Sequence record: NC_048045.1
Reading direction: 5' to 3' (one strand)
Length of the DNA: 64,000 nucleotides
Each line of letters opens with the position of its first letter. The first letter of the stretch is position 1. The translations under genes and the position numbers were made by a program. Under the pieces are notes generated by a model that was not told where the DNA came from, did not search any database, and saw only the letters and a list, made by a program, of their open reading frames with translations. Of the stretch, positions 10,728 to 63,192 are shown one piece after another.

Positions 10728-11312
10728 CTACTGGGGTTGGGCCGGCGCCGGGATGGCGAAGGCAAGGGATTGTTCGACCAGGGCCAAGAGGTCGGTTACC
10801 AGCTTGGGATTGAGGTCGTCCTCGGTCAGGGCGGCGGCGACGGCGTTGATCCGCGACCACGTGAAGTCCTCGGTCAGGCCAAGGTTGTGGAGGCGCAGCA
10901 GGGTCTCGCCGTGGATCGCCACGACGCCGGAAAGGTCACGCAGGTTGCGCAAGGTCAGCAGCCGCTCGGAAAGCATCTTGATCGCGCTGCCCGAGGGCGC
11001 CAGGAGCAGGCGCATCCAGTCGCCGCCGGGGTCGTCGCCCCGGCGCAGGTCCGGATGGTCCAGGGTCGCGCCCCAGATCACCGCGTGGGCTTTGGCGGCC
11101 AGCGACTGCCGGCGCTTGGCGATGGCCTCGGCTTCCTTGGCTTCGCGCTGGGCGGTCAGGAAGGTGGCGATGATCGCCGAGGGAAAGATCGCCACGAGGA
11201 AGAAGGCGAGGCGGTCGGTCCAGACCGCGTGCGGCGTGATCACGTTCATGGCCGTGCCGATCAGCACCGTGGGATAGATCAGGCCGCCGTGGCGGTGGAT
11301 GAACTTGATCAT
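10728..11312 (-). CDS. Hypothetical membrane protein
   Basis: Two N-terminal hydrophobic segments; GGAGG RBS; first gene after a promoter. Confidence 0.75.
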   Translation of the reverse strand: MIKFIHRHGGLIYPTVLIGTAMNVITPHAVWTDRLAFFLVAIFPSAIIATFLTAQREAKEAEAIAKRRQSLAAKAHAVIWGATLDHPDLRRGDDPGGDWMRLLLAPSGSAIKMLSERLLTLRNLRDLSGVVAIHGETLLRLHNLGLTEDFTWSRINAVAAALTEDDLNPKLVTDLLALVEQSLAFAIPAPAQPQ

Positions 11313-11350
11313 GAAAAGGGCCTCCGGCGTTGTCGTCGGAGGCCCTTCTA
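11310..11350 (-). repeat. 41-nt exact repeat, copy 1 (copy 2 at 63152-63192, plus strand)
   Basis: TAGAAGGGCCTCCGACGACAACGCCGGAGGCCCTTTTCATG is identical in both places. Confidence 0.9.
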
Positions 11351-11387
11351 GCGAGTCGGTGTCAGGCTGTCAACACATGTCAGCCAG
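11316..11387 (-). promoter_or_regulatory. Phage promoter family member
   Basis: TGGCT-N6-TGTTGACA-N17-TAGAAG-N7-GACGACAAC-GGAGG. Confidence 0.8.
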
Positions 11388-19005: not shown

Positions 19006-19905
19006 CTACCAGCCAAACTTGGTGGCGCAGACCGGGCCGATGCCGGCATCGATCGAAGCGTGATTGGTCAGTTCCCGGCCGCAACAGGCGCAGGAGCCGG
19101 TGCGCTGACCGTAAGCGATGGCGGCGGCGTGGGGATCGGCCGCCAGGGCGAGGATTTCGGCTTCCTGCTCGGTGGTGCAGTCGCGCACCTTGAGGAACTT
19201 GCCGTTCATTACCTTGCCCATGTACACGCCCTCCACGGTGCGCACGTAGATGGCGCCGGCGTTGGTGCTGTCCATGGCGGCGGGCTTGAACTTGTAGCCG
19301 GCCAGTCGCAGGGTGATGTTCTTCAGGCCCGAACCCTTGGCGTGGAAGAAGGCTTCTTCCAGCTTGGCGAGCGAGATCACCGGCGCGGCGGCTTCGCGGG
19401 CGACCCGCTCGGCTTCGCGCTGGATCGCGCGCTTCTTGTCCTCGGCCGCGAGCCGTTCGACGGTCGCCAGTTGCTTCTCGGTCAGGTGACCGAACCGTTC
19501 CACGGCCTGAAGCATCTGATTGGCGAAGTCGAAACGCGGCGCGCGCTCGACCATCCAGGCCGTCGCCTCGGGGTGCGCCAGCTTCCAGGCGGCGCGTTGC
19601 TGCTGGAGATCGAACTGGACCTGGGCCTTTTTCTTGTCGGCGTTGGCGCGGCGGCGGGCGCGTTCCTCGGGCGAGGTCTTGCGCACGAACTTGCCCTTGC
19701 CCTTACAGACGAAGCACTGGCGGCCGTACTGCGACATGCCGCGATAGGTGCCCGTGCCCCGGCATTTGGGGCAAAGCTCGATCCACTCGGCCGGCGGCGG
19801 GGTCTCGTCGACGAAATCGACGCCCGCCTCCATGGGCTCACCCGGTTGGGTTTCCCGGACCACCGGCTCGGTGATCAGTTCATCCATGTCAGCGAAAAGG
19901 TCCAC
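19006..19905 (-). CDS. Zinc-binding protein with DnaJ-type CxxCxGxG pair and C-terminal DUF6011-like motif
   Basis: CPKCRGTG..CFVCKGKG; CACCGRELTNHASIDAGIGPVCA. Confidence 0.8.
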   Translation of the reverse strand: MDLFADMDELITEPVVRETQPGEPMEAGVDFVDETPPPAEWIELCPKCRGTGTYRGMSQYGRQCFVCKGKGKFVRKTSPEERARRRANADKKKAQVQFDLQQQRAAWKLAHPEATAWMVERAPRFDFANQMLQAVERFGHLTEKQLATVERLAAEDKKRAIQREAERVAREAAAPVISLAKLEEAFFHAKGSGLKNITLRLAGYKFKPAAMDSTNAGAIYVRTVEGVYMGKVMNGKFLKVRDCTTEQEAEILALAADPHAAAIAYGQRTGSCACCGRELTNHASIDAGIGPVCATKFGW

Positions 19906-19909
19906 GGCG

Positions 19910-19980
19910 GGTCTCCATCAGCAGGTGATGGAGCCCTTCTAGGCCTCTCGACCTAGCGTGTCAACACTCTCGCGCCAACA
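19910..19980 (-). promoter_or_regulatory. Phage promoter family member lacking GACGACAAC, with RBS hairpin
   Basis: TGGCG-N6-TGTTGACA-N17-TAGAAG; CTCCATC/GATGGAG stem. Confidence 0.75.
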
Positions 19981-26731: not shown

Positions 26732-26783
26732 CCTCCTTCGTTGTCGTCGGAGCCTACCTAGACTGGCGCGAGTGTGTTGTCAA
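26732..26783 (-). promoter_or_regulatory. Phage promoter family member with inverted TGGCG site in the spacer
   Basis: TTGACA-ACACACTCGCGCCAGTC-TAGGTA-N6-GACGACAAC-GGAGG. Confidence 0.85.
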
Positions 26784-30658: not shown

Positions 30659-31227
30659 GCCTTGATCTCCTCGAAGCGGCCGTCCATGAACTCGGCCTCG
30701 CGCCGGCCCCAGACCTGTCCGCTGCCGTCGATATAGGTCAGCAGGATTTCGTCATCCTGGATCGGGGTCTCGCATTGGATGCGGACGATCCCCACCAGGG
30801 CATAGTCGGTCCCGCGCTTCTTGTGCCGGAACCGCCGCATGCCGCGCGGAAGTTCGGCCAGGAACGCTTTCATGGCGTCGGCTATCTTGGTGAAGCCGTG
30901 CGGGAAGTGCGAGCCGGGGTTGCGCATCCAGGCATAGACCGTGGCCAGGGCGAACCGCCCGGCCGCGATCTCGCCGGTGGGGTCCTTGCGCAGGACGTCC
31001 GGGGCGTGCTCTTCCAGATAGTTGGTGCCGACGAGCGCCAGCATCCGGGCCTCGTCGACGCTCGTCGGCAGGTTGATGTGTCCCACCGGGGTCGACGTTT
31101 CCAGGCGCTTGATCATGTCGTCGATCAGCTTGGCGCTGTCCTGGTGAAAGCGCTTGAGGTCGCCGCCATAAATGGAGGCGCTGCTGAGATGCCAGTCCCG
31201 GAGAAGGATGAGAGGGTCTTGAGTCAT
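30655..31227 (-). CDS. Hypothetical protein with C-terminal DUF1653-like domain
   Basis: RFRHKKRGTDYALVG..LLTY..VWGRREAEFMDGRFEEI; start MTQDPL. Confidence 0.7.
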   Translation of the reverse strand: MTQDPLILLRDWHLSSASIYGGDLKRFHQDSAKLIDDMIKRLETSTPVGHINLPTSVDEARMLALVGTNYLEEHAPDVLRKDPTGEIAAGRFALATVYAWMRNPGSHFPHGFTKIADAMKAFLAELPRGMRRFRHKKRGTDYALVGIVRIQCETPIQDDEILLTYIDGSGQVWGRREAEFMDGRFEEIKA

Positions 31228-43047: not shown

Positions 43048-43105
43048 GAGTGTTGACAGCCTCGCCGCGCCCGGTTAAAAGCCTCCTCGACGACAACGCA
43101 AGGAG
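43038..43105 (+). promoter_or_regulatory. Phage promoter family member
   Basis: TGGCG-N6-TGTTGACA-N17-TAAAAG-N7-GACGACAAC-AGGAG. Confidence 0.85.
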
Positions 43106-43111
43106 CCTGTC

Positions 43112-44275
43112 TTGACCGATTTCCCGATCATCCGCGCCGCCATCGAAGGCCGCCGCGCCGCCGCGTTCGACACGATGCTGGCCAATGCCGACGCCTTCGC
43201 CGCCGAGGGCGTGCTGATCAAGGCCGAGTTCGAGGACATCAAGGGCGTCTTCACCCGCTGCATCGACGCGGCCTGGGAGGTCGTGCGCAAACGCTACTTC
43301 TTCATCGACCACGCCCTGCGCACCAAGGAAGTCGAGGACCTCTTCTGGAGCTTCTCGATCCCCTACCCGCACGTCCTGCCGGGCTACCTGAAGAAGACCC
43401 TGGCGGCCAAGAACATCCCGTCCAACGTCCGCGAGGACCTCGTGGCCCTGTTCAACGAGGGCATCGCCCTCAACGACAAGCTGGTGGCGCTCAAGCCCCT
43501 GATCGGCAAGCGCGCGCCCAAGAAGACCAAGGTCGAGATCGAGCGCGAGGGCAAGGAGCGCACCTGCCAAATCTGCGGTCGCGGCATCCTGGCCGAGGGC
43601 GGCACCATCGCCCACCACGGCTATACCCGTCCCGGCTACGGCTGGCAGACCGCCTCCTGCTCAGGCGCCCGCGAGGTCCCGTTCGAGATCAGCCGCGACG
43701 AACTGCGCAAGGAGATCGAGGCCCTCAAGGCGTGGCGCGTGCGCAAACTCGCCGAGCGCGCCCGGATCGAGGCCGAGGAAGTCAAGCTGGTGCTGAAGTA
43801 TCAGGTCTCCGAGCAGGACCCGCGCCGCGCGCAGGGCTTCAAGCTGACCGTCGATCGCCAGATCGAAGTCACCCGCGACACCTTCGAGGCCCTGAAGGTC
43901 TCCACGCCCGAGGCCTTCTCGGGCAAGTACAACCCCCGCAAGGAGGGCAAGTACACCTACGAGGCCCTGACCTTCGATGGTCTCAAGACCCAAGCCATCG
44001 GCATGGTCGACATCGAGATCGGCCGCCTGGACACTGACATCCTCCGCCAGCAGGCCCGCTATGACGGCTGGACCCAGAAGGCGATCTTTGGCGCCGGCCG
44101 CTATTGGTTCATCGGCGAGACGGTCCGCGTCCCCGGCGGCGACACCGGCAAGATCAAGGGCTTCTACCAGCACGTCCCGCCGCAGCCCGGCGACATCGCC
44201 GGCGGCCTCTACCTGGAGCAGGAAGCCGGCGGCCACAAGTCCTGGAACGTGGCCGAACTGGAAGCGGTGGGCTGA
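43112..44275 (+). CDS. Hypothetical protein with Zn-binding-like motif
   Basis: TCQICGR..IAHHGYTRPGYGWQTASCSG. Confidence 0.8.
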   Translation: MTDFPIIRAAIEGRRAAAFDTMLANADAFAAEGVLIKAEFEDIKGVFTRCIDAAWEVVRKRYFFIDHALRTKEVEDLFWSFSIPYPHVLPGYLKKTLAAKNIPSNVREDLVALFNEGIALNDKLVALKPLIGKRAPKKTKVEIEREGKERTCQICGRGILAEGGTIAHHGYTRPGYGWQTASCSGAREVPFEISRDELRKEIEALKAWRVRKLAERARIEAEEVKLVLKYQVSEQDPRRAQGFKLTVDRQIEVTRDTFEALKVSTPEAFSGKYNPRKEGKYTYEALTFDGLKTQAIGMVDIEIGRLDTDILRQQARYDGWTQKAIFGAGRYWFIGETVRVPGGDTGKIKGFYQHVPPQPGDIAGGLYLEQEAGGHKSWNVAELEAVG

Positions 44276-44676
44276 TGCGCTTCGTCTCCCAGACCCAACC
44301 CTATTGCCGCTGCTGTGGCAAGCCGATCAAGAAGTTCACGACCCGCCTGACGTTCGGCAAGCGCGAGTACAAGGACCACGGCTGGTCGATCGACCGCACT
44401 GAAAAGCCGATGTCGAAGGAGGAACTCCAGCGCGCCGTCAACGGGAAGATCATCTCGTTCTCGTGGGATCACGATACGACCTATGGCGCCGACTATCAGC
44501 CCATCCGCACGAAGACCCACATTGGCGAGGCCAATGTCTGGGACGGCGAGACCTACGAGGCGGAGTTCTTCTGCACCCTGCGGTGCGCCGCCGCTTTCGG
44601 CGAGATGGCCGCCCGTGAATATCCGGGCCTCCACACCCAGACCTACGCTGACGCCATGAGAAAGAGGGAGGGCTAA
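44275..44676 (+). CDS. Hypothetical Cys-containing protein
   Basis: Start MRFVSQ; CRCCGK..FCTLRCA. Confidence 0.75.
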   Translation: MRFVSQTQPYCRCCGKPIKKFTTRLTFGKREYKDHGWSIDRTEKPMSKEELQRAVNGKIISFSWDHDTTYGADYQPIRTKTHIGEANVWDGETYEAEFFCTLRCAAAFGEMAAREYPGLHTQTYADAMRKREG

Positions 44677-45398
44677 TGTCCGACGAGATCAGGAAGACCC
44701 ACGAAGCCTTCGGCGTGATCGGCTACAGCCACACCCAGGGCGACACCGATCTGGTCGGCGTCGACTACGCCCAAGGGCACTACGTGTCCCTGACGATCAA
44801 GACGGCGATCGCCTACGAGGGCGAGACGCATGATCGCTTCCACGGCGACAAGTACATCTGCAAGGTGTCGATGAGCGAGGTCCAGTGGGCCTCCTTCATC
44901 GCCAACCCCAATCGGGGCGACGGCGTGCCCTGCACCTTGCAGTTCTACCGTGACCCGCTGACCGGCGAGGCCAAGCAGCCCAAGTACATGCGCGAGCGCC
45001 TGACCCGCATCGACCGCACCCGCGAGGCCGTCACCGCCCGCGCCAAGGCCCTGTCGACCAAGGTCAAGGAAGCGCAGGCCGAACTCCAGCGGCTGATGGA
45101 CGGCGGACCGATCAAGAAGGGCGACCTCAAAGCGCTCAAGGACCTGCTCTACTTCGCCAACCAGGACATGGACATGAACCTGGGCTACTTCGTCGAGCGG
45201 GTCGAGGAGACCATCGACAAGGCGGTGGTCGACGCCAAGGCCCAGGTCGACGCTCACGTCGATTTCGTGGTCCGGGAACTGGGCGTGCGCGCCCTGGGCT
45301 CGCGGCTGCAAGCAGCGATCGACGCAGGCCATGAGCCGGGCGCGGTCGGCCAAGCCCTGCTTGACGCGATAGCCCCGCCCCAGGAGCCGCCGACGTGA
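44676..45398 (+). CDS. Hypothetical phage protein
   Basis: VSMSEVQWASFIANPNRGDGVPCTL; helical C-terminus. Confidence 0.8.
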   Translation: MSDEIRKTHEAFGVIGYSHTQGDTDLVGVDYAQGHYVSLTIKTAIAYEGETHDRFHGDKYICKVSMSEVQWASFIANPNRGDGVPCTLQFYRDPLTGEAKQPKYMRERLTRIDRTREAVTARAKALSTKVKEAQAELQRLMDGGPIKKGDLKALKDLLYFANQDMDMNLGYFVERVEETIDKAVVDAKAQVDAHVDFVVRELGVRALGSRLQAAIDAGHEPGAVGQALLDAIAPPQEPPT

Positions 45399-45637
45399 GG
45401 ACACCCCGCTTCCTGAACCGCTGGCGCGACGGCGACATCGCCGAGGAAAAGGCCTTCCAGACCAAGGGGCTGGCCTTCGCCCATGCCGCGCGCATCGCCA
45501 GCCGCCTGGGCGAGATCGTTCGTGTCGAGCACCAGGAACCCATCAGCCAAGCCTCCCCGAACTGGGCGGTGGTCGAGAAGTGGTCCTTCCACCCCGACGG
45601 CCGCATGACCCGTGACCTCAAGAAGGAAGTCCTATGA
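45395..45637 (+). CDS. Hypothetical protein
   Basis: GTGA overlap. Confidence 0.65.
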   Translation: MRTPRFLNRWRDGDIAEEKAFQTKGLAFAHAARIASRLGEIVRVEHQEPISQASPNWAVVEKWSFHPDGRMTRDLKKEVL

Positions 45638-46128
45638 CCCGCAGCACCGCCGAAATCATCGCCCGCATCGAGGCCCTGGAGAACGACCTCTCGGACTTCT
45701 TCGGCTTCCAGAAGGGCGATCTGATCTGCTACCTGCCGTTCGACGACGCCAAGCGCTGGCTCAACGACAAGGCCTCGGCCGACGCCTGGGAGCCGAACGT
45801 CAACACGCCCGAGGCGATCAAGTCGTCGATCTACGACTACATGTCGTTCGCCTGGGACAAGGCCAACAACTGCCGGGGGCTGTCGGCCGGTCGCTCCATC
45901 GACCACATGAAGGCGTGGCTCTGGCTGCTGGGCGAAGACGAGGCGTGGGTCGAGGCCCTGCGGCTCGACAACTACAACATGTACGGCAAGCCCCAGCTTC
46001 GTGCGATCTGCGAGCGCTTCGGTTGGGACTGGACCAAATGGGATGACGGGTCCTGGACCAACAGCGAAGGCGAGGCCGGATACGGCCCTGATCAAGTCCC
46101 GCGCGTCGGCGTCGTCGAGCCGGCCTAA
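45634..46128 (+). CDS. Hypothetical protein
   Basis: FAWDKANNCRGLSAGRS..YGKPQLRAICE. Confidence 0.8.
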   Translation: MTRSTAEIIARIEALENDLSDFFGFQKGDLICYLPFDDAKRWLNDKASADAWEPNVNTPEAIKSSIYDYMSFAWDKANNCRGLSAGRSIDHMKAWLWLLGEDEAWVEALRLDNYNMYGKPQLRAICERFGWDWTKWDDGSWTNSEGEAGYGPDQVPRVGVVEPA

Positions 46129-46135
46129 ACACTCC

Positions 46136-46212
46136 GCTGGCGTTAGAGTGTTGACAGTCGTCGGGGCCTCCTCTATAGACACGCTCGACGACAACGAGGA
46201 GGCCCCGATGAC
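46136..46212 (+). promoter_or_regulatory. Phage promoter whose 17-nt spacer is antisense to the downstream RBS and start codon
   Basis: TGGCG-N6-TGTTGACA-GTCGTCGGGGCCTCCTC-TATAGA-N7-GACGACAAC-GAGGAGGCCCCGATGAC. Confidence 0.9.
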
Positions 46213-47989
46213 CACCGAGACCATGACCCTGAGCTTCCGGATCGAAGGCGCTGCGCTCGTTGAGCGCGCCCGCGATCGCGTCATCGAAGGCAACTGGGAG
46301 CACGGCCTGCGCATCCTCGTCGAGGGTCTGCACGGCATGACCTATGACTACGCCATCGACATCCTCAGGGGCAAATACACGCTGGGCGGCTGGTCCTCGG
46401 ACCCCGAGGGCGTCTATCTCGCCGACCAGGACCCCGAGGACGAGACCTTCAGGCGCTACAAGGAGACCTTCGACTACCAGTTCGGCGCCGTCCTGAAGAT
46501 GGACGATGGTCGCATCATGCGGCCCTACGCGGTGGTCGACAGCTACTCCAAACTCGATTTCGATTCGCGCGTGCGCCACCTGCGCCTAGCCCCCGGCTCG
46601 GACCCGGTCCACGTCCGTCCCAAGCGGTTCCGTGACGTGCGCGCCGAACTCGATGGCGAGCAGATCGACTGGGCCTATCGCTCGCTCCACTACGCCGACA
46701 ACCCGACCCAGGACATCGCCAAGCTGGTGACGCTGGACGGATATCACCCGACCCACCGGATGGTCGTGCTGTTCGAAGAGGTCCGGGACTACCCCAAGCT
46801 CCTGAAGCCGTCGGTCGAGACCGACGCCCAGAAGGTGGTCGATCTGGCCCTAAAGTGCGGGCGCGGGCTCAACAAGCGCGGGCACATCTACGATCACGGC
46901 GAGCCGGGCGTGACGGACGAGTACATGTACGGCACGACCAAGACGGTCGACAACGTCCCCGGCGCCTGGACCCTGCGGAACCCGAACTACATCGCCCCCG
47001 CCACCGCGAGCCTGACCGAGGCTGTCGCCGGCGCCAACAAGGTCTCGGCCGTCAAGGCGATCGAAGCCGTCGGCGGCCCTATGGACGAGGTCGGAGCCAT
47101 GAACCGGCTGATCAAGGATCAGGTCGACGAGGGCATGACCATCAGCGCGGCCATCGACATCGCCCGCGCCCGCATGGCTCTCATGGGCGGCATGGCCGAG
47201 GACCCAGAGCAGCGCCTGCGGGCGATCAACGACGCCTACGCCGCCAAGTATGAGCGGGCCGAGGGCCGCAGCGTCGAGGAGTACCGCAAGGCCATCCTCG
47301 CCCAGGCCGGCGACGACTTCTTCGATCTCGCGTACACGGATGTCGACGGCAAGGACGTCGTCCTGAAGGTCCCGACCGCGCCGTTCGAGCAATGGGCTCT
47401 GTGGCGCACGGCCGGCTCCCACCTCGCCAAGCCTTGGAAGCGGGTGACCTACACCGGCTTCAAGATGTTCGGCGATGATCCCTACCACACCGACTGGGTG
47501 CTGGGCGCGGGGCTCAATCCCGAGGACTGGCCGATCGTGGAGAGCGACAACCCGCCGCTCCACAAGGCCGCCTGGGACAAGCGCTTCCAGCTTGCCGAGG
47601 AAAAGCTGGGCGGCAACATGCGCGTCCTGCTTGGCAAGGGCTTCGTGACCGGCAAGATCGTGATGCTCAAGCCGGGCGAGACCCTATCGCCGGGCGAGAT
47701 CGGCGTGATCCGCAACGCCGGCCCCGACTTCGTCCAGGCCGCCCAGAGCGCGATCGAGCACAACACCGCCCTGATCTGCGAGAATGGCGGCAGCGTCGCC
47801 CACCTCGTGGTCGAGTACCTGGACAAGCCGCTGCGCCTGACCCGGATCGAGAACGCCCGCAAGATTTTCAAGGACGGCATGACCGTCTACCTCGACTTCG
47901 ACAAGTCGACGCGCACGATCGCCAAAGGCGGCCTGGGGCCGAGCCCCGCCGACCTGGGCCTGGACTCCGAATGGGAGATTGAAGAGTGA
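46208..47989 (+). CDS. Large protein with C-terminal PEP-utiliser swivelling phospho-His domain
   Basis: GKGFVTGKI..GEIGVIRNAGPDF..ALICENGGSVAHLVV..DGMTVYLD; start MTTETM. Confidence 0.75.
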   Translation: MTTETMTLSFRIEGAALVERARDRVIEGNWEHGLRILVEGLHGMTYDYAIDILRGKYTLGGWSSDPEGVYLADQDPEDETFRRYKETFDYQFGAVLKMDDGRIMRPYAVVDSYSKLDFDSRVRHLRLAPGSDPVHVRPKRFRDVRAELDGEQIDWAYRSLHYADNPTQDIAKLVTLDGYHPTHRMVVLFEEVRDYPKLLKPSVETDAQKVVDLALKCGRGLNKRGHIYDHGEPGVTDEYMYGTTKTVDNVPGAWTLRNPNYIAPATASLTEAVAGANKVSAVKAIEAVGGPMDEVGAMNRLIKDQVDEGMTISAAIDIARARMALMGGMAEDPEQRLRAINDAYAAKYERAEGRSVEEYRKAILAQAGDDFFDLAYTDVDGKDVVLKVPTAPFEQWALWRTAGSHLAKPWKRVTYTGFKMFGDDPYHTDWVLGAGLNPEDWPIVESDNPPLHKAAWDKRFQLAEEKLGGNMRVLLGKGFVTGKIVMLKPGETLSPGEIGVIRNAGPDFVQAAQSAIEHNTALICENGGSVAHLVVEYLDKPLRLTRIENARKIFKDGMTVYLDFDKSTRTIAKGGLGPSPADLGLDSEWEIEE

Positions 47990-49741: not shown

Positions 49742-49965
49742 TCGATCACGTCTACCGCCGCGATCCGCGCGGCAAGGACTACGGCGTCCAGCGGATGGAC
49801 CTGGGCGAGGCCCTGGCGGTGGTCGCCGCCGAGAAGCAGGACTTTCTCCTGCGGCTCGTCGAGGTCCTGCACGAGAACAATCTCCTGCGCGACGCAGACG
49901 TCCTGGAATTGCTCGGCAAGGGCTGGGGCCTGGAGGCCTACGACGTCCTGTACGAAGACGATTGA
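49738..49965 (+). CDS. Hypothetical protein
   Basis: GTG start MIDHVY. Confidence 0.65.
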   Translation: MIDHVYRRDPRGKDYGVQRMDLGEALAVVAAEKQDFLLRLVEVLHENNLLRDADVLELLGKGWGLEAYDVLYEDD

Positions 49966-50014
49966 CAACACTCTCGCGCCAGCATAGAGGTGTCTCCGAC
50001 GACAACGAAGGAGG
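49962..50014 (+). promoter_or_regulatory. Phage promoter with inverted TGGCG site in the spacer
   Basis: TTGACA-ACACTCTCGCGCCAGCA-TAGAGG-N7-GACGACAAC-GGAGG. Confidence 0.85.
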
Positions 50015-51433: not shown

Positions 51434-51509
51434 GCTGGCGTTCTTGTGTTGACAGCGACCCTCATGCGGGCCTAGAACGTCATCGACGACAACAAAGGAG
51501 CCCCGCATG
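51434..51509 (+). promoter_or_regulatory. Phage promoter family member; spacer pairs with the start codon region
   Basis: TGGCG-N6-TGTTGACA-N18-TAGAAC-N6-GACGACAAC; CATGCGGG/CCCGCATG. Confidence 0.85.
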
Positions 51510-57705: not shown

Positions 57706-58331
57706 TGTCGTTCGTCGACCGGATGCGGGCCTACCTGCAAGCGGACCTGGAGATCGTCAAGCACTTCACCGAGCGGTTCTTCGCCAAGCGTCCTGACGAG
57801 CCCGACGCGGGCGTCTCGCCGCAGCCCATGAAGCCCGCCCCGCCTGGGGCGGGGATGGGAAGCGGAACAATACCGGGCGGCGGCGGTGGTGGCGGCAACA
57901 CCCACTTCTACTATCCCGGCGTGGGTGGAGGCGGCGGCTATGCGACAGCGTCGGGCGGCAACGGCGGCGGCAGCTATAGTGGCTCATCCGGGCAGGTCCT
58001 GGCCTGCAATGGCCATGCCATGCCCTGGATGGTCGTATCGCCCGCAAAGTTGAAGTCCACCAAGCCGGCCGGCAGCTTCAAGGACCTCAACGCGACCGAG
58101 GAGGCGGTGGTCCACAACGTGGCCCAATACGAGGGCACCGAACTGGTCCGCGAGCGGGACGGGACGTTCTCCTATTGCCGCAGCGGGCTGGCGTTGGCCA
58201 AGGATCGCGTCAAGGCGCGTACCGTCAATGCCTTGATTTCAAAGAAATTTCTGGACGTGGTCGAGTTCGGCGACCGCGCCGAGGCCCTGGTCTGCAAGCT
58301 CGGCTCGAACATCTTGGTCCACGGCCGCTAG
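57705..58331 (+). CDS. Hypothetical protein with Gly-rich linker
   Basis: PGGGGGGGN, PGVGGGGGY; globular C-terminus. Confidence 0.7.
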   Translation: MSFVDRMRAYLQADLEIVKHFTERFFAKRPDEPDAGVSPQPMKPAPPGAGMGSGTIPGGGGGGGNTHFYYPGVGGGGGYATASGGNGGGSYSGSSGQVLACNGHAMPWMVVSPAKLKSTKPAGSFKDLNATEEAVVHNVAQYEGTELVRERDGTFSYCRSGLALAKDRVKARTVNALISKKFLDVVEFGDRAEALVCKLGSNILVHGR

Positions 58332-58338
58332 AAAGTGT

Positions 58339-58398
58339 TTGACAACACTCTCACGCCAACATAGAACCCTCCTCGACGACAACGAGGAGGGCCATATG
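58339..58398 (+). promoter_or_regulatory. Phage promoter with inverted TGGCG site and 9-bp RBS hairpin
   Basis: TTGACA-ACACTCTCACGCCAACA-TAGAAC-CCTCCTC-GACGACAAC-GAGGAGGG. Confidence 0.9.
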
Positions 58399-63126: not shown

Positions 63127-63192
63127 TGTTGACAACACTCTAACGCCAACATAGAAGGGCCTCCGACGACAACGCCGGAGGCCCTTTTCATG
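63127..63192 (+). promoter_or_regulatory. Phage promoter with inverted TGGCG site and 11-bp RBS hairpin
   Basis: TGTTGACA-ACACTCTAACGCCAACA-TAGAAG-GGCCTCC-GACGACAAC-GCCGGAGGCCCTTTT. Confidence 0.9.
63152..63192 (+). repeat. 41-nt exact repeat, copy 2
   Basis: Identical to the reverse complement of 11310-11350. Confidence 0.9.

Follow-up and report, generated by a model that had tools for sequence, protein, structure and literature searches.

The window analysed here, a stretch of 64,000 nucleotides, is 100% identical to bases 124001-188000 of Caulobacter phage CcrBL10 (MH588544.1), and a window coordinate is converted to the record coordinate by adding 124000. Positions 1-41014 carry annotated genes on the minus strand and positions 41151-64000 carry them on the plus strand; nearly all of these genes encode small proteins of unassigned function. 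The mRNA strands are C-rich (34% C and 31% G over the window). The sign of the GC skew flips at ~41 kb, the same place at which the direction of transcription changes, with a C-rich mRNA strand in both blocks. Approximately two dozen close relatives in the phage collection share 82-87% DNA identity with the window; they comprise phiCbK, Karma, Magneto, Swift, Rogue, the Ccr, RBC and BL isolates, and S2L.

The region of interest is the short intergenic space between gp233 and gp234 (Table 1). All genes from 43053 to 46151 are co-directional, and a sequence scan revealed no terminator-like site between these two positions. The stop codon of gp233 (TAA, 46126-46128) is located 29 nt ahead of the 5' arm of a long inverted repeat, which reaches from a putative promoter into the start of gp234. 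The gene after gp234 begins at 47986 within a GTGA overlap, and the two genes are probably translationally coupled. A 78-nt stretch of gp234 is composed of 45% C and 23% G. Pfam searches assigned no family to gp234, gp261, gp270, gp160 or gp233, and an Rfam search of 40000-64000 returned no RNA family.

Table 1. Features of the gp233-gp234 junction and of the cassettes compared with it, in window coordinates. Promoter elements and hairpins are predictions.
Feature	Position	Strand	Basis or remark
gp233, upstream gene	45634..46128	+	annotation; last gene of the unit starting at the 43053 cassette
Conserved element GGCGTnAGAGTG	46139..46150	+	abuts the -35 on its upstream side; common to most cassettes
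-35 hexamer TTGACA	46151..46156	+	sequence
17-nt spacer, hairpin 5' arm (anti-Shine-Dalgarno, anti-AUG)	46157..46173	+	inverted-repeat search
-10 hexamer TATAGA	46174..46179	+	TAGAAG or TAGAAC in most other cassettes
Discriminator CACGCTC, 7 nt	46180..46186	+	sequence; within the hairpin loop
Leader GACGACAAC, inferred 5' end of the local mRNA	46187..46195	+	begins at the 8th nt past the -10
Hairpin 3' arm: Shine-Dalgarno, ATG, first two bases of codon 2	46196..46212	+	inverted-repeat search
Shine-Dalgarno GAGGAGG	46196-46202	+	sequence
Five bases between Shine-Dalgarno and ATG	46203-46207	+	sequence
ATG, gp234 start	46208-46210	+	annotation
gp234	46208..47989	+	annotation; 593 aa
gp245 cassette	51449..51509	+	spacer CATGCGGGCC pairs over the ATG
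gp261 cassette	58339..58398	+	-10 end and discriminator CCCTCCTCG pair with CGAGGAGGG; leader forms the loop
gp270 cassette	63129..63192	+	13-bp G+C-rich hairpin from -10 to Shine-Dalgarno, 4-nt loop, then TTTT
gp160 cassette	11310..11378	-	twin of the gp270 cassette, identical over ~40 nt
gp177 cassette	19903..19969	-	lacks GACGACAAC; hairpin right after the -10 covers the Shine-Dalgarno

A family of promoter cassettes

The putative promoter ahead of gp234 is one copy of a repeated cassette, the members of which were collected on both strands with a pattern search of our own; a promoter scan that demanded T at the last -10 position missed every one of them. From 5' to 3', a cassette consists of (C)GTnAGAGTG, TTGACA, 17 (rarely 18) nt, a TAGAAG-like hexamer, 6-9 nt, GACGACAAC, 1-4 nt, GGAGG, 5-7 nt and the start codon, with 56-62 nt between TTGACA and the start codon. 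The window contains 19-21 copies in both orientations, each of which precedes the first gene past one of the longer intergenic gaps. A scan of five genome pieces brings the total for the genome to ~25 near-identical cassettes, all but two within 114-195 kb. Both hexamers and the distance between them are in line with a promoter of the host -35/-10 type; the housekeeping consensus of Caulobacter reads TTGACGS, 10-14 nt, GCTANAWC. Discriminators are mostly C/T-rich and end in CTC.

The leader motif GACGACAAC is present in 18 exact copies in the window, 16 of them at a distance of 35-37 nt from the first base of a TTGACA. Almost all early cassettes have it at their inferred +1, for example at 43089, 49998, 58375, 63165, 32756(-) and 11337(-), which is where a start site would be expected, and it probably marks the +1. 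The motif could be a tag for translation, for stability or for a phage factor. A second motif, CGTGAGAGTG, is located directly 5' of TTGACA in most cassettes. In four of them (49962-49985, 58331-58362, 63129-63152 and 26760-26783(-)) it is absent or degenerate, with a weak copy at 58339, and in the same four (49962, 58339, 63129 and 26783(-)) the spacer carries ACACTCTCRCGCCA, its reverse complement. The -35 is thus centred in a potential palindrome, GTGTTGACAACAC, and CGTGAGAGTG/ACACTCTCRCGCCA looks like a protein-binding half-site that can occupy either side of the -35.

Outside the phiCbK-like phages, the exact cassette pattern gave only chance matches in unrelated low-G+C DNA when IMG/VR and one genome each of 185,579 bacterial species were searched. 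Brevundimonas phage Bajun, distantly related within the same subfamily, carries a looser version (AGAGTG-TTGACA, 17 nt, TACAGA, 7 nt, ACGACGACC, AAGGAG); in Bajun, the homologue of gp234 lacks its own cassette and overlaps the gene upstream. In the literature, GACGACAAC was encountered in primer sequences only, and neither the phiCbK genome paper nor the CtrA phage paper describes the cassette. The early promoter cassette of the phiCbK-like phages is defined here, with no description found in the literature searched.

Comparison among relatives suggests that the cassettes sit at mosaic junctions of gene shuffling. For the gp270 cassette, Rogue and CcrBL10 are 95.6% identical upstream, 97.2% within the cassette and 64.4% downstream. 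In the phages compared, except the near-identical RBC63, this cassette is 87-97% identical to that of CcrBL10 and the downstream sequence 60-64%, which is near background. The gp234 protein shares 80% identity with the Karma type and 63% with that of Rogue, and its cassette is Rogue-like. The 63152-63192 (+) and 11310-11350 (-) segments, 52 kb apart on opposite strands, have an identical -10-to-ATG interval of ~40 nt, which suggests duplication of a cassette or gene conversion.

Rarity, predicted folding and conservation of the gp234 stem

An earlier sequence-only reading of this DNA had proposed that the entire 17-nt spacer pairs with the ribosome-binding region of gp234 by 16 Watson-Crick pairs and one G-U. 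Our inverted-repeat search confirmed both arms: they are 17 nt each, 94% complementary and 22 nt apart, and the G of the single wobble faces the U of the AUG. The 5' arm lies wholly between the two hexamers and hence precedes every start site that this promoter could use. The length of the loop is that needed to span the -10, the discriminator and the leader. The match between GTCGTC of the spacer and GACGAC of the leader was considered as a selected pairing and rejected. RBC63 has lost this match and retains the one with the start-codon region (GAUGAC), so the pairing with the ribosome site is the conserved one.

When all 64 kb were scanned for 17-nt arms that form 16 or more Watson-Crick pairs around a loop of 3-40 nt, only the focal site emerged, and such a repeat was absent from 30 sequences simulated from the window by a first-order Markov model. 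Short stems are common at 65% G+C, and perfect 12-nt inverted repeats are in excess as well, with three in the window compared to a simulated mean of 0.6; the focal stem contributes two of these as sub-registers. The third, GCCGACGAGCG... / ...CGCTCGTCGGC at 31026-31070 with a 21-nt loop, is located inside the coding region of the minus-strand gene gp202c.

The predicted folds of transcripts with and without the 5' arm, a comparison that the sequence-only reading had suggested, differ strongly. A long RNA from 46129 to 46240 folds with -49 kcal/mol (z = -4.7), a stability reached by 0 of 200 shuffles, while a short RNA starting at 46188 folds with only -6.9 kcal/mol (z = +0.7). Opening the region from ATG-13 to ATG+2 costs 24.9 kcal/mol in the long RNA and 4.0 kcal/mol in the short one, and shuffles of the upstream part never reached the higher value (0/200). 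The duplex of the spacer with its own ribosome site was calculated at -39.4 kcal/mol and ranks first among 19 cassettes; the promoter regions of the other 18 average -14 kcal/mol against the gp234 ribosome site. The notion of a chance match in a G+C-rich genome, for which the frequency of short stems would speak, is effectively refuted by these simulations and shuffles together with the conservation of the stem in 11 phages described below.

To follow the stem through evolution, the orthologous cassette was taken from ten relatives, which together with CcrBL10 gives 11 phiCbK-like phages and seven sequence versions. Pairs were counted outward from the invariant CTCCTC/GAGGAG core, with slid registers as controls; a MAFFT alignment shifts the 3' arms of two lineages 2 nt out of register and was not used for the counts. 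All 11 phages retain the stem, with energies between -24.8 and -39.4 kcal/mol, and in each of them it includes the Shine-Dalgarno sequence, the AUG and codon 2. In register, 66 of 77 positions (86%) are paired over the seven versions, compared to 30-53% in the controls with the 3' arm displaced by 1-3 nt.

Compensatory changes in relatives, the absence of which had been named as a refutation of the pairing, were observed. Between CcrBL10 and Swift/Magneto, five of the 11 flanking positions are changed on both sides: position 1 from C-G to A-U, position 2 from G-C to A-U, position 6 from C-G to U-A, position 8 from G-U to U-G and position 10 from U-A to G-C. Changes that preserve a wobble recur in addition. 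RBC63 has its wobble at a different stem position, and members of the phiCbK lineage have GGUU, GGUC or GGCC in the outer part of the 5' arm, each of which pairs with GGCC at codon 2. Outside the focal site, a C to U change in the 5' arm of the gp160 stem retains a U-G pair in Karma and Rogue, and at the eighth base pair of the gp261 stem, C-G of CcrBL10 corresponds to G-C in phiCbK, Swift and RBC57. There are also changes that break pairs within lineages, namely C-U in BL57 and Ccr2, C-C in Ccr2 and A-C in Rogue, which leave one to three mismatches per arm pair in these phages. Moreover, most of the double changes fall on a single split of two lineages, and cassettes are swapped between phages, so that the number of independent compensatory events is small.

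The sequence-only reading took its one G-U pair as favouring a role at the level of RNA, and the wider comparison agrees with this. Positions that are not Watson-Crick paired include nine G-U and three A-C, an excess that fits pairing of the sense-strand RNA and not of DNA or of an antisense RNA. Overall, there is good in silico support for an RNA helix that only read-through transcripts can form and that compensatory changes have maintained.

Generality of the predicted masking among cassettes

Similar stems had been listed at six other sites, and these turned out to be of different kinds. The hairpin of the gp261 cassette (58360-58398) has a 9-bp core and an outer CAUA/UAUG pairing over the start codon; its cassette folds with -22 kcal/mol as a long and -5.7 kcal/mol as a short RNA. 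That of gp177 (19910-19936) has 11-nt arms with 91% complementarity, with -30.8 kcal/mol for the long and -4.6 kcal/mol for the short RNA. Both are upheld. A second gp177 hairpin, CUAGGUC-GAGA-GGCCUAG at 19941-19958 (-), extends across the spacer and the -10. The gp245 hairpin (51463-51509; 11-nt arms, 91% complementary) is weaker, with p = 0.10-0.11 against spacer shuffles, and at 26732-26758 the stem is weak, with no pair of at least 7 nt from a 6-nt seed.

The remaining two, at 63155-63186 (gp270) and 11316-11347 (gp160), have 14-nt arms with 93% complementarity around a 4-nt loop and resemble terminators. Stems of this type fold with -29 kcal/mol in the long and -2.9 kcal/mol in the short RNA. 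The layout of an intrinsic terminator was found only at 63155-63190 and 11312-11347, and TransTermHP called the counterparts in Karma, phiCbK and Swift rho-independent terminators. For gp270 and gp160, termination appears to be the simpler reading, though the stem also hides the Shine-Dalgarno sequence. The 5' arm of these hairpins begins inside the -10 hexamer, so transcripts initiated locally would bypass them.

Three tests were used to judge how general the masking is. By opening energy against shuffles of the upstream part, masking is strong at 46151, 58339, 63129, 11373(-) and 19964(-), moderate at 43053, 49962, 51449, 26783(-) and 25098(-), and absent at nine other cassettes. When promoter regions were exchanged among the 19 cassettes of the window, the mean energy was -15.2 kcal/mol for own pairs, -13.8 kcal/mol for other pairs (permutation P = 0.027) and -11.8 kcal/mol for shuffled sequences. 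The difference between the latter two values reveals a small generic anti-Shine-Dalgarno bias across the cassettes. Specific matches in this test were restricted to 46151 (by 25 kcal/mol), 58339, the 63129/11373 twins, 19964 and 51449, and 13 of the 19 cassettes paired no better with their own site than with those of others. Finally, with the hexamers fixed and spacer and discriminator shuffled, 6 of 25 CcrBL10 cassettes reached p <= 0.05 and 4 of 25 p <= 0.01; over eight phages, 18 of 75 unique cassettes reached p <= 0.01, all of them from four orthologous groups. Hence, an arm matched to its own ribosome site is present in about a quarter of the cassettes, and the genome-wide mechanism that the sequence-only reading had put forward was an overstatement.

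The generic bias, along with the C/T-rich discriminators ending in CTC, is what would be expected if the focal repeat were a feature of the DNA or of the promoter, that is, a protein-binding inverted repeat, a cruciform, or a by-product of a pyrimidine-rich promoter facing a purine-rich Shine-Dalgarno sequence. We regard such an origin as improbable: the focal arm exceeds the arms of other cassettes by the above 25 kcal/mol in its fit to the gp234 site, the arm sequences and loop lengths (4-25 nt) vary among cassettes and so offer no common protein site, and the G-U excess as well as the repeated replacement of C-G by U-G would be mismatches in DNA or in the antisense strand.

A further possibility is that the hairpin acts on the transcript from upstream, either as an attenuator or terminator or as a 3'-end stabiliser or processing site of the gp229-gp233 mRNA, and that it overlaps the ribosome site only due to the ~80-nt intergenic space. 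Several points are in line with this. Comparable stem-loops in T4-type phages, between the -35 and -10 or over the -10, stop upstream transcription (PMC2839356), and the gp270/gp160 stems have the terminator features and annotations given above. Several cassettes have hairpins wholly inside the promoter and clear of the Shine-Dalgarno sequence (37617c, 31283c, and 7493 and 16001 in Karma), and the units are not separated by other terminator-like sites. At the focal site, however, the stem is followed by CACCGAG with no T run, and its 22-nt loop is poor for intrinsic termination; an intrinsic terminator was rejected here for these reasons. In addition, the pairing tracks the AUG and codon 2 in both lineages though their sequences differ, which a pure terminator or 3'-end hairpin does not need. 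An action on the upstream transcript is thus a tentative explanation, which we consider rather unlikely for gp234.

Proposed mechanism and comparison with known systems

On balance, we find it probable that the focal hairpin is a translational mask of the type known from T4 genes e, soc and 49, able to form only in transcripts that arrive from upstream. In the mechanism that we infer, the 5' arm is the spacer of a predicted strong, host-type (sigma-70/sigma-73-like) early promoter, and the 3' arm comprises the entire ribosome-binding region of gp234 with Shine-Dalgarno sequence, AUG and codon 2. RNA that began at the upstream cassette at 43053 and read through would hold both arms, form the 17-bp helix and exclude the ribosome. 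RNA begun at the local promoter, at or next to GACGACAAC, would lack the 5' arm and leave the ribosome site open. The promoter would in this way double as a translational insulator, with gp234 made only from its local promoter. As the following gene overlaps gp234 by GTGA, the silencing could spread to coupled genes, which would probably be made only from this promoter, too. Untranslated read-through RNA might also be ended by Rho, for which the C-rich mRNA and the C-rich stretch of 78 nt in gp234 would be suited.

Masking is favoured over the other readings by the 3' arm, which coincides exactly with the ribosome region in both lineages despite the differing sequence near the AUG, by the fit of the loop, the lack of a T run after the stem and the possible spread of silencing through the GTGA overlap. 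The distance of the gp233 stop codon also supports it, since ribosomes terminating there should not melt the hairpin. We consider the effect on translation to be plausible. Alternatively, RNase III could cleave the 17-bp helix, which might raise or lower translation. Perfect complementarity exists between the final codons of gp233, GTCGTCGAGC (46110-46121), and the junction of discriminator and leader in the main hairpin loop, GCTCGACGAC (46183-46192). This match could make a pseudoknot-like contact in read-through RNA or could be due to chance in GTC/GAC-rich codons.

The cassettes at 43053 and 46151 have the same promoter architecture. The purpose of the mask is therefore likely to be the insulation of units and not timing, and its benefit has to be argued other than as a temporal switch. 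In a wider and more doubtful version, the early region of phiCbK-like phages would be built of self-insulating cassettes, in which spacers and discriminators have evolved into arms against the ribosome site and each promoter silences the translation, and through Rho the transcription, of RNA from the previous unit. Such an arrangement would replace terminators in 70-80 kb largely without them, and GACGACAAC would mark the translatable transcripts.

If the masking is correct, the promoter spacer, which is usually held to be unconstrained in sequence, carries a second code that chooses the translatable transcripts, and adjacent expression units are insulated compactly and without a terminator. 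A mechanism of a few T4 late genes would then also operate at a host-type promoter, in a phage that is unrelated to T4 and infects a model bacterium. With the arm located between the hexamers, promoter activity and hairpin formation should be separately mutable, which makes for an easy test.

The precedent of T4 e, soc and 49 had been cited correctly. In these genes and I-TevI, long transcripts form an inhibitory helix, with 100-fold less lysozyme being made, and a promoter embedded in the DNA of the 5' strand gives rise to a shorter, translated transcript, an arrangement that is conserved in related phages (PMC3014915). The gp234 site would share with them the sequestration of the Shine-Dalgarno sequence and/or AUG in the long RNA and the promoter at the 5' strand, both of which are predicted here. 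It differs in that T4 uses late promoters (TATAAATA box, gp55) and separates early from late expression, whereas the focal promoter is of host type and of the same class as the one upstream, so that no division into temporal classes as in T4 was found. It further differs from T4 in that the arm is exactly the 17-nt spacer, in its unrelated host, phage family and base composition, and in being known from sequence alone.

A second likeness is to the PeSL (promoter-early stem-loop) cassettes of T4-type phages RB49, phi1, PST and nt-1, in which a strong sigma-70-like early promoter is combined with a stem-loop that attenuates or terminates upstream transcription and marks gene shuffling (PMC2839356, PMC4122927). 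In common with PeSLs, the phiCbK-type cassettes are repeated, short and intergenic, comprise a sigma-70-like promoter, stem-loop, Shine-Dalgarno sequence and ATG, and occur in many copies among small genes lacking an assigned function; the cassette sequence is conserved and the flanking genes differ. The 5' arms lie in the spacer, -10 or discriminator, and the stem-loop would be made only in upstream transcripts. PeSL stems, however, are inside the promoter and have been shown to terminate, while the focal 3' arm is the ribosome-binding site and is followed by no T run. The invariant GACGACAAC leader and the GTG-TTGACA upstream element have no counterpart in PeSLs, and no sequence homology was detected between phiCbK-type cassettes and T4-type PeSLs. 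The resemblance is one of analogy and not of membership. Intrinsic terminators that overlap the next promoter provide a third comparison, which applies to gp270/gp160 with their 13-bp stem, 4-nt loop and TTTT and not to the focal hairpin with its long loop and lack of a U-tract. The gp234 site is best read as a candidate case of T4-style masking, in which promoter DNA encodes the arm that hides a ribosome site, here within PeSL-like cassettes of an unrelated phage.
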